NCBI RefSeq assembly: GCF_006345805.1
Contig: NC_043014.1
Location: 39,804,001-39,868,000, forward strand
Direction: 5' to 3'
From: Octopus sinensis
Lineage: Eukaryota
DNA: 64,000 nt
A program made the position numbers and the translations under genes. Every line of letters begins with the position of its first letter. The stretch's first letter is position 1. Shown in pieces: positions 19,001 to 22,000 of the stretch. The notes under the pieces were generated by a model. That model saw only the letters and a list, made by a program, of their open reading frames with translations, was not told the origin of the DNA and did no database searches.

Positions 19001-22000
19001 GAGTCATTGGCATTAGGAAGGACATCCAGCCATAGAAAAACCATGCCAAATCAGATTGGAACCTGATGCAATTCTCCAACTTACCACTTTCAGTCAAACT
19101 AACCCATGCCAGCGTGGAAAGCAGAAGCTAAATGATGATGATGATGATGATGATCCCAATTAAATTACTTAGTGGTTCAGCAAAAGAGACTGCTAGAATA
19201 TGTACCAGACTTAAAATAACTCAATAGGGTCAATCTGCTTGAGTAAAACCCTCCAAGGCAGTAACCCCCAGCATAGCTGCAGTCCAATGATTAAAACAAG
19301 TGAAAGATAGGATATATTTAATAGCTACAAGGACTTGATTAGAAGTTAACGAGTTTATTATTGAATTAGATAACTGCTTTATTTACATTTGATTAATTTA
19401 GTTTTCAACTGTTCTATACATTTTTGTTTTCTCCAAAAGTACTCTGGATTTCCATATTCATAAATATCACACTTATGAAATCTGATTTAGATCAACATCA
19501 AATAAAAATCAAATGGAAATTGTAGTAGTGATACCTGTGCCAGTGGCACGTAAAAAGCACCATCCAAACGTGGCCAATGTCAGCACCACATTGACTGGCT
19601 TCTGTGCCGGTGGCACGTAAAAAGCACCATCCAAACATGGCCAATGCCAGCACCACATTGACTGGCTTCTGTGCCTGTGGCACGTAAAAAGCACCAACCG
19701 ATCTCGGCTGTTGCCAGCCTCCCCTGGCACCTGTGCCAGTGGCACGTAAAAAGCACCCACTACACTCACTGAGTGGTTGGCATTAGCAAGGGCATCCAGT
19801 TGTAGAAACACTGCCCGATCAGACTGGAGCTTGGTGCAGCCTCCTGGCTTCCCAGACCTCGGTCGAACCGTTCAACCCATGCTAGCATGGAAAACGGATG
19901 TTAAACGATGATGATGATGATGATGAAGATTTGATTGACATTTTGTTTTAAATTATTTTGCTCTAATAGTATTCTTCATTTTCTTTTTCTTTTTTTTTTT
20001 ACTCTAGTCACTGAAGAAAGATAAAGAGGTGAGTCTAGCATTATTTGTTTACTTTTTAATGCGTGGAGATGGGGTGGGGTGGTGGTTGGATGTGTGTCAG
20101 TAATGTCTGCCATGACACTGATGCCAAACCATATCAGACCAAAAGCAGTGGCTGATGATGTCCTTTAGACACTATCAGTGGCACAAAGAGGGAAAATTTG
20201 CATCCATGAGCAATTACTTGTCTTCTACAACTAATAAAAAAAACTTTCCTAGGTCAACCCTGGTGTACGTGTGTATGTACACTCACACACACACAATTAG
20301 GCTTTGTCTAATTGGTTTCTCGTCATTACCTTCCAATCACACATATTTGATGTTAGGTTAAATTATTTATGTTGTCGCCTTACTGGCACTTGTGCTGGTG
20401 GCACATGAAAAAAACATTCAAGCGAGGTTGTTGCCAGTGCCGCTGGACTGGCTCCTGTGCAGGTGGCACATTAAAAGCACCACTTGAGCGTGGCCGTTGC
20501 CAGTACCGCCTGACTGGCACGTGAAAGCACCCACTACACTCTTGGAGTGGTTGGCGTTAGGAAGGACATCCACCTGTAGAAACTCTGCCAGATCAGATTG
20601 GAGTCTGGTGCAACCATCTGGTTTGCTAGACCTCCGTCAAATCATCCAACCTATGCTAGCATGGAAGGTGGATGTTAAACGATGAACTTGACACTTCAAC
20701 TTAACAATTCAAGTGTGAAGTGAAAGCAATGATTATTTTCAGCTAGGCTGATGAATAATATGTTTTGTCTTTGAACATAGCCAGTTTTAGGCCCTGTACT
20801 CATTACCATCCTAATCTAAATTAAAATCATCCATCAAAATTTCATGTTAATTATGTTCTATACACCAGCTTGATAATCCTTTCTTCTGTAGGCACAAGGC
20901 CTGAAATTTGAGGGGAGGGATTAAATTAATTACATCGAACTCAGTGCATGACTGGTACTTATTTTATTGATCCCCAAAGGGTGAAAGGTAATGTTGACCT
21001 TGGCGGAATTTGAACTCAGAACGTAGCGACAAGCAAAATACCGCTAAGCATTTTGCCCAGCGTGCTAACAATTCTACCAATAATGGCAAAGTTATTTTAA
21101 TGAATTCTTCATCATTTCGAAATCGAACCAAATCCGACGACTGGCACCCATGCCAACCTCCCTTCATTGGACACTAAACTCTGCTTGCGAAGTCCTGTTG
21201 GGGCAAGTGAAATCCAAATTGAACCAAATTCGATGACTGGCACCCAGTCGTTGCCAGTGCCACTGGACTGACTCCTGTGCGGGTGGCAAGTAAAGAAACA
21301 CCGTTTCGACCTTGTGCTTGAGGAGACTTATTGAGTCAAGTACATCAACATCAAAAATCAAACGGAAATTGTAGTTGTGATACCTGTGCCGGTGGCATGT
21401 AAAAAGCACTATCCAAACGTGGCCGATGCCAGCGTTGCCTTGACTGGCTTCTGTGCCAGTGGCATGTAAAAAGCATTGACCAATCATGGCTGTTGCCAGC
21501 CTCACCTGGCACCTGTACCAGTGGCACATAAAAAGCACCCACAACACTCACGGAGTTGTTGGCGTTAGGAAGGGCATCCAGCTGTAGAAACATTGCCAGA
21601 TCAGACTGGAGCCTGGTGCAGCCTTCTGGCTTCCCAGACTCTGGTCGAACCATCCAACCCATGCTAGCATGGAAAACAAACGTTAAACGATGATGATGAT
21701 TTGATTGACATTTTGTTTTAAATTATTTTGCTTTAATAGTATTCTTCATAATTTTTTTTCTGTTTTTTTTTTACTCTAGTCAATGAAGAAAGATAAAGAG
21801 GTGAGTCTAGCATTATTTGTTGACTTTTTAATGTGTGGAGATGAGCGAGGTCATTGCCAGTACCGCCTGACCGTCCCCCATGCCAGTGGCATGTAAAAAG
21901 CACCCATTACACTCTCAGAGTGGTTGGCATTAGGAAGAGCATCCAGCTGTAGAACTCTGCCAGATCAAGATTGGAGCCTGGTGCAGCCATCTGGTTCGCC

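Follow-up and report, generated by a model that had tools for sequence, protein, structure and literature searches.

The dixin gene (DIXDC1) of Octopus sinensis carries two copies of a 21-nt microexon within a single intron. Both copies are located in a stretch of 64,000 nucleotides of contig NC_043014.1 (assembly GCF_006345805.1, positions 39,804,001 to 39,868,000 of the forward strand), which was analyzed as a whole and is called the window in the following; positions are given relative to its first letter. We found that the duplication is genuine, lineage-specific and intragenic, and that it occurred after the lineage of O. vulgaris and O. sinensis had split from O. bimaculoides. As an explanation for the locus as a whole we consider it probable that the second microexon resides on a short templated copy of its own surroundings, which was placed between the tail of one retrotransposon fragment and the truncated 5’ end of another.

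The gene at this locus is dixin, as had been proposed in an earlier note made from the sequence of the window. A Pfam search of the species’ own genome detected a DIX exon (PF00778) at 31703–31831 on the + strand with a score above the cut-off. A padded query composed of the window exons retrieved dixin proteins with CH and DIX domains, the top ones from O. vulgaris, O. bimaculoides and Argonauta hians. PF00307 and PF00778 are both present in the O. vulgaris and O. sinensis dixins that share the window exons; the exons for the CH domain are located upstream of the window. Within the window every dixin coding exon could be placed from HAAHIPPD (887) through the stop codon (33892). The coding exon upstream of the microexons (18032–18178, +; RDVSQKDK...LQSMRRTE) matches O. 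vulgaris and O. sinensis dixin exactly and ends in phase 0 with the donor GAG/gtaact. The downstream coding exon (23478–23642, +) starts in phase 0 after ...tttcag, begins with DSVVDVQ and ends with GSIDILPQ.

Microexon copy 1 (TCACTGAAGAAAGATAAAGAG, encoding SLKKDKE) is located at 20008–20028 (+) with the acceptor AG at 20006–7 and the donor GT at 20029–30, copy 2 (TCAATGAAGAAAGATAAAGAG, encoding SMKKDKE) at 21780–21800 (+) with the acceptor AG at 21778–9 and the donor GT at 21801–2. Copy 1 is contained in the O. vulgaris protein CAI9737784.1 and in the O. sinensis RefSeq protein XP_029647261.1, copy 2 in XP_029647261.1. Both exons are preceded by a long T tract and ...TACTCTAG with a CTAG acceptor, and followed by GTGAGTCTAGC, the donor being GAG/GTGAGT; their splice sites are canonical AG/GT sites and their length lies within the limit of ≤30 nt for microexons. 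Each copy is part of a block in which an RTE-like 3’ fragment ending in (GAT)n is followed by about 82–86 nt of T-rich intron, the 21-nt exon and, on its donor side, 43 nt of intron. The two blocks with their acceptors, donors and peptides are thus seen as the earlier note had described them. Since both microexons measure 21 nt and share phase 0 with the dixin exons on either side, the reading frame remains intact with neither, either or both of them, which likewise agrees with that note.

At the position of the microexon the O. vulgaris protein reads ...RRTE SLKKDKE DSVV..., five out of five O. bimaculoides models ...RRTE SMKKDKE DSVV... and Argonauta ...RRPE SKKKDKD ESVV.... In the O. bimaculoides and Argonauta loci the seven residues are encoded by one separate 21-nt exon, in introns containing no assembly gaps. 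Decapodiform dixins show a seven-residue segment of the TEKTGEE type at the same place. Dixins of bivalves, brachiopods, echinoderms and vertebrates contain a longer, unalignable stretch there. Comparison of these sequences indicates that the 21-nt microexon is real and conserved across octopods. It is probably constitutive; every annotated O. bimaculoides isoform includes it.

The non-transposable-element core of the blocks, 147 nt in length, matches just two places in the whole 2.72-Gb genome, both of them in the window. A dispersed repeat or a chance match was therefore rejected as its source. An independent, gap-free assembly of O. vulgaris is colinear with window positions 17212–24500 (7.3 kb) at 99.3% identity and contains both exons 1772 nt apart. 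An artefact of assembly or haplotype resolution, which could invoke only the generic risk of repeat-rich introns, would have to account for this separate assembly as well as for two copies that differ by 8 substitutions in 139 comparable sites plus indels and that have different flanks. Since the same two copies recur in O. vulgaris, we regard an assembly artefact as ruled out, in agreement with the earlier note, which had argued against an assembly echo. Two copies are thus present in O. vulgaris, one in O. bimaculoides and one in Argonauta.

We refer to the intron-microexon-intron core around copy 1 as segment F (19922–20071, +) and to the corresponding segment around copy 2 as F’ (21698–21843, +). 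F’ is 146 nt long and lies 1.77 kb downstream of F in the same dixin intron. Its left edge is a (GAT)n stretch and its right junction, GGAGATG/AGCGAGG, shows a microhomology of 1–2 nt. The intron of O. bimaculoides is colinear with window positions 18005–18361, 18772–18957, 19140–19489, 19926–20374, 20683–20896 and 23295–23692. Positions 37803–38257 of the O. bimaculoides locus align to 19926–20374, a part that spans copy 1. In this intron alignment no O. bimaculoides counterpart was found for 20897–23294, the interval that holds block 2. Because copy 1 is flanked on both sides by orthologous O. bimaculoides sequence, it is the in-situ ortholog and F the source of the duplication, whereas copy 2 is derived.

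A three-way comparison over the 139 sites showed that F and F’ share 6 differences from O. bimaculoides, while private changes amount to 3 in F and 4 in F’. Divergence between F and F’ is 5.8%, in comparison to about 7.5% between the species. Shared and private differences together place the duplication later than the species split, yet show that it is old. Copy 2 does not differ from the one exon of O. bimaculoides, the ATG included. The methionine codon is therefore ancestral and copy 1 has changed from ATG to CTG; the earlier note had assumed the reverse, a gain of ATG by copy 2.

The duplicated stretch is short. Blocks 1 and 2 can be aligned over about 500–580 nt, the best conserved part being 19922–20071 versus 21698–21843. 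Upstream of F and F’ similarity extends over 360–430 nt at about 88%, which is the background level of the repeat family. Judged from these alignments, the demonstrable duplication comprises about 146 nt (F’) plus at most the (GAT)n junction. The suggestion that blocks 19490–20071 and 21344–21843 were duplicated as such consequently holds for the 146-nt core but not for the bodies of the transposable elements (TEs), which show a 219-nt 5’ extension in block 2 and share no private non-CpG variants.

The repeat upstream of each microexon copy is the 3’ untranslated region (3’UTR) of an abundant long interspersed nuclear element (LINE). In block 1 it is represented by a 5’-truncated RTE-like fragment of subfamily I, termed A (19492–19921, +), with three internal 67-nt units and a (GAT)7 tail. 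A is inserted 86 nt upstream of microexon 1 and is absent from O. bimaculoides, where a clean empty site joins GATTTACA directly to AGATTTGATTGAC. The TE of block 2, termed E_I (21124–21697, +), is an RTE-like 3’UTR fragment of the same subfamily with a (GAT)4 tail. It remains colinear with the LINE 3’UTR for 219 nt beyond the 5’ end of A (from 21342 back to 21124), the start of A being equivalent to 21343. Positions 21200–21697 are colinear over positions 1–498 with at least 40 genomic copies at 86–91% identity, a better match than the 88% identity with A. Between A and the A-equivalent stretch of block 2 (A’) the non-CpG distance is 7.9%, while distances to unrelated copies range between 4.9 and 9.8%. 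A and A’ are not sisters in the tree and differ at 5 positions in the last 50 nt before the tail. Relative to a 29-copy consensus they have four CpG transitions in common and zero non-CpG variants. On this evidence E_I is best regarded as an independent member of the family and not as a copy of A. One consideration weighs against it: in a star-like burst of the subfamily A’ might have been copied from A very soon after A had inserted. We grant this a residual chance, and the 5’ extension of the block-2 TE argues against it.

These relationships also bear on classical LINE 3’ transduction, which the earlier note had offered as one origin of the second copy. A transcript of A would have read through the tail into 146 nt of flanking sequence, and this RNA would have been retrotransposed 1.8 kb downstream. 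A is indeed located directly 5’ of F in the same orientation, F’ begins within about 3 nt of the A/F junction beside a (GAT)n tail, and the LINE family, which encodes APE and reverse transcriptase (RT), has many nearly identical copies, in several of which the 1059-aa frame is uninterrupted. The supposed offspring is, however, 219 nt longer at its 5’ end than the supposed source. By sequence distance the TE bodies resemble unrelated copies at least as much as each other, E_I finding matches of up to 91% elsewhere, and they share no private non-CpG variants. F’ is followed by neither a new tail, nor a target site duplication (TSD), nor target DNA after 21843, but abuts a 5’-truncated element of subfamily IIb. 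Transposable elements are involved in the duplication, as had been proposed, but 3’ transduction fits poorly and we consider it very improbable.

The element next to F’, termed B’ (21845–22072, +), belongs to a younger and very abundant RTE-like subfamily, IIb, and ends in a (GAT)5 tail. A first look at its relatives yielded 1148 candidates; 40 scored copies are 93–96% identical. In most of 29 inspected copies the family sequence runs on upstream of the start of B’ (...GGCATGTGTAAAAAGATTCGA/GCGAGG), so B’ is 5’-truncated exactly at F’. On its other side the tail of B’ abuts the right half of a split 163-bp repeat unit, which is followed by about three tandem 163-bp units (22073–22560, +). The left half of the split unit is found at 21076–21123 (+), interrupted by the composite insert. 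Joining 21020–21123 to 22073–22235 rebuilds a complete 163-bp unit that can be aligned to the units at 22130–22560. Since the flanks of 21124–22072 rebuild one unit, E_I, F’ and B’ together occupy a single target site. Non-CpG divergence of B’ from its consensus is 2.0%, that of the F’ lineage 2.9%; by this measure the ages of B’ and F’ are indistinguishable. A further RTE-like 3’ fragment, B (20375–20682, +), was assigned to subfamily II by diagnostic sites. It is absent from O. bimaculoides, inserted downstream of copy 1 and lies outside the duplication. The 163-bp repeat region additionally contains a near-perfect, nested inverted repeat at 22587–22868 resembling the hairpin of a miniature inverted-repeat transposable element, with arms at 22587–22634/22821–22868 (98%) and 22636–22723/22725–22812 (89%).

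We also considered that 21124–21342 and B’ might be the two ends of one TE that had been gene-converted by the 3’ part of A together with F. This idea was dropped because B’ belongs to a different, younger subfamily. It is further ruled out by 21200–21697, which is a normal contiguous family member.

With regard to the origin of F’ we lean towards a filler model, in which this segment was synthesized from a template at the 5’ junction while B’ inserted, as the arrangement of the junctions suggests. Target-primed reverse transcription would first have brought B’ into the (GAT)n tail of E_I, the older of the two elements. Before its 5’ end was sealed, the polymerase would have switched to a nearby template carrying F together with the (GAT)n of A. 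This template may have been RNA, either dixin pre-mRNA or a read-through transcript in which F and A’s (GAT)n tail were both present, or else DNA. Annealing of the copied (GAT)n of A to the (GAT)n of E_I could then have closed the junction. B’ shows the features of a chimeric retrocopy, namely a truncated LINE with a tail that is fused in the same orientation to F’ at 21843/21845 with 1–2 nt of microhomology. Two points count against the filler model. The template switch is read solely from the anatomy of the junction, and RNA- and DNA-templated versions would yield an identical product. Moreover, a switch to an internal acceptor site with just 1–2 nt of microhomology differs from the typical end-to-end jump.

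In the version that relies fully on RNA, the RT of the integrating LINE would have jumped to dixin pre-mRNA or read-through RNA and pasted the 146-nt intron-microexon-intron cassette in sense orientation into the same intron, and the second microexon, fully able to be spliced, would now be co-included. We put this forward only tentatively and rate it as unlikely. If true, it would represent an RNA-mediated, in-cis exon duplication by an RTE-type LINE, lengthening a linker in a Wnt-pathway scaffold.

Alternatively, the duplication might have arisen at the level of DNA alone. In one form A would have undergone non-allelic homologous recombination (NAHR) with an RTE copy further downstream, and a deletion would have followed; in the other, microhomology-mediated break-induced replication (MMBIR) or synthesis-dependent strand annealing would have copied F into the junction of E_I and B’. 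The interval is bounded by homologous repeats of the same orientation, at the left the junction falls within a (GAT)n microsatellite that is shared, and at the right it shows 1–2 nt of microhomology. Short templated insertions derived from nearby sequence are typical of MMBIR. NAHR, in contrast, predicts that the whole interval of about 1.2 kb from A to E_I is doubled, while only 146 nt are present twice. As there is no second copy of 20072–21123, NAHR would need an extra, precise deletion, and the unequal recombination between RTE copies considered in the earlier note fits poorly in its simple form on the same grounds. For any of these DNA-level routes an independent break would have to fall exactly at the junction between the tail of E_I and the 5’ end of B’, a coincidence that a single event at the integration of B’ explains. 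The matching ages of B’ and F’ also speak against a separate event. We therefore rate an origin by DNA-level events alone as unlikely and retain the filler model as our preferred one.

We also assessed whether copy 2 contributes to the protein. The intron between the two microexons would be 1751 nt long and canonical. Because both copies have equally strong splice signals and are in phase 0, both should be included by default. XP_029647261.1 carries SLKKDKE-SMKKDKE in tandem (...TESLKKDKESMKKDKEDSVV...), so a product with two microexons, which had been anticipated in the earlier note, is represented in a public gene model. Double inclusion would give ...RRTE-SLKKDKE-SMKKDKE-DSVV..., that is, seven extra residues. 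Splicing of copy 2 is likely but unproven, as judged from its splice signals and the gene model.

Several observations weigh against the use of copy 2. The O. vulgaris annotation has copy 1 only. A short-query protein search for fragments spanning the microexon junctions gave no match. XP_029647261.1 has been adjusted by the model elsewhere, using a cryptic acceptor around a 1-nt deletion at about 11501, so double inclusion could be a prediction artefact. Finally, the core consisting of AG, the 21 nt and GTGAGT shows 1 difference in 29 nt compared to about 6% in the flanks, which is not a significant signal of selection for copy 2. Taken together, these points could mean that copy 2 is a real duplicate but a silent pseudo-exon, skipped as in the O. 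vulgaris annotation and conserved not significantly above the level of the intron, and that the RefSeq protein with two microexons results from the kind of adjustment not driven by RNA that is seen elsewhere in the gene. On the other hand, copy 2 shares the pyrimidine tract, CTAG acceptor, purine-rich body and GAG/GTGAGT donor of copy 1 and is identical to the functional exon of O. bimaculoides. Relatives with one copy support one exon only, so the RefSeq model presumably drew on spliced reads. We therefore hold a silent pseudo-exon to be the less likely outcome, though one deserving some weight. The splicing switch proposed in the earlier note comes down to two gene models that differ from each other, and this claim could not be upheld.

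In an AlphaFold2 monomer model of low overall confidence, with a mean predicted local distance difference test (pLDDT) score of 60.5 and computed from a 12-sequence alignment, a long helix spans residues 311–418, as expected for the central coiled coil of dixin. Residues 447–460 are located in a low-confidence loop (pLDDT <50) between helices 424–449 and 463–478. Extension of a coiled coil by whole heptads, which we had considered, is unsupported by this placement. In the predicted structure double inclusion would plausibly lengthen a charged linker that connects two helices within the coiled-coil region.

At about 11501, inside the dixin exon 11483–11586 (VVLRSRLQQATEIS), the window shows AGACT-CAGC in place of the AGACTTCAGC seen in O. 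vulgaris and O. bimaculoides. This loss of 1 nt shifts the frame of this exon, and because of it XP_029647261.1 lacks VVLRSRL and begins the exon at a cryptic acceptor (TQQATEIS). The O. sinensis assembly is probably in error here, with a distorted RefSeq protein as the result. VVLRSRL, absent from the O. sinensis protein, was also considered as a second 21-nt microexon; this was rejected since it forms the start of the ordinary exon 11483–11586. Alternative inclusion is annotated for another exon, a cassette at 26832–26882 in the linker before the DIX domain. The O. sinensis model and the majority of dixin models of O. bimaculoides contain this cassette, and the O. vulgaris model and isoform X4 of O. 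bimaculoides omit it.

The LINE behind the fragments is present in the window in two further 5’-truncated copies, both with an RT, a PHD-like finger following it and a (GAT)n tail (7100–9540 and 14200–17250, −). An uninterrupted copy elsewhere in the genome (L069, 388–3567) encodes a 1059-aa open reading frame (ORF) with Exo_endo_phos at 54–265, RVT_1 at 583–783 and a PHD-like finger. Genome-wide more than 100 copies were scored, with 96–99% amino-acid identity and several with an uninterrupted 1059-aa frame, pointing to very recent activity of the family. A single ORF with APE and RT and a 3’ end consisting of a short tandem repeat, (GAT)n, fit an RTE-type LINE by its sequence features. We take its C-terminal motif to resemble that of BovB. 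A Dong/R4-type LINE, prompted by the PHD-like match after the RT, was rejected because the 1059-aa frame has an N-terminal APE endonuclease. Octopus RTE elements with microsatellite tails have been described (PMC9115989), and the LINE is possibly related to the element RTE-2_OV of that study.

Compared with the O. vulgaris locus (L005, 57591–61375), the window has about 4.1 kb more in the interval that holds the copy at 14200–17250. This suggests that the young LINE insertion is missing in O. vulgaris, as a difference between the species or because it is polymorphic. In the Argonauta hians locus (L004, 35860–35910) an RTE-like 3’ end, CCCATGCC.TCATGGAA.GCAGACATTAAATAGATGATCATCATCAT, is located about 45 nt upstream of the microexon at a site other than that of A. 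Such elements may thus have repeatedly targeted the AT/GAT-rich sequence in front of this microexon.

Duplications of this kind are known, and the dixin case adds one whose junctions have an unusual anatomy. It resembles tandem exon duplications (PMC9741552) in that neighboring homologous exons of equal length (21 nt) and phase are found within one gene with the frame intact. Most described cases are ancient, mutually exclusive and concern exons of normal size, whereas the dixin case is young and concerns a microexon on 146 nt within retrotransposon fragments, and the sole model with copy 2 has both exons in tandem. Chimeric LINE insertions generated by template jumps have been documented, including tripartite chimeras in Magnaporthe (PMC2104539) and recombination of L1 with diverse RNAs (bioRxiv 10.1101/2025.02.02.635956). 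As in such chimeras, among them U6/L1, the tailed 3’ part of a 5’-truncated LINE adjoins, in the same orientation and with minimal microhomology, a copy of a cellular sequence at its 5’ end. In contrast to them, the captured piece is an intron of the same gene 1.8 kb away and not a small RNA or mRNA, and the element is RTE-like and not L1. The 5’ end was resolved in a pre-existing (GAT)n tail, so there is no readable TSD, and an RNA origin is only a candidate.

With LINE 3’ transduction of the L1 type the locus shares a flank directly 3’ of a LINE tail at both the source and the derived position. It differs in a derived TE that is not a copy of the source TE, being longer at its 5’ end and sharing no private variants with it, and in the absence of a tail or TSD after the flank. 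Like conserved in-frame microexons of neuronal and scaffold genes, the dixin exon has 21 nt, keeps the frame, is bounded by strong splice sites, codes for a charged peptide of surface or linker type and is found as a separate exon octopod-wide; unlike them, it is included in all annotated O. bimaculoides and Argonauta isoforms, which gives no hint of alternative or neural-specific splicing.

Our literature searches retrieved no earlier description of the dixin microexon duplication, and the two-unit sequence is already contained in a public gene model, though undescribed. Practical consequences are limited to flagging that the gene models of O. sinensis and O. vulgaris disagree and that the O. 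sinensis assembly probably contains a 1-nt error. The locus allows the order of TE insertions and duplication to be compared across Octopus species. It provides a clean and datable example of how a repeat-saturated cephalopod intron can yield new coding potential: a conserved microexon was copied with just sufficient intron on either side to stay splice-competent, and both junctions are marked by retrotransposon tails. Should both copies be spliced, O. vulgaris and O. sinensis would have a charged dixin linker of 14 residues compared to 7 in other octopods, a small lineage-specific change in a scaffold of the Wnt/Dishevelled-Axin pathway.

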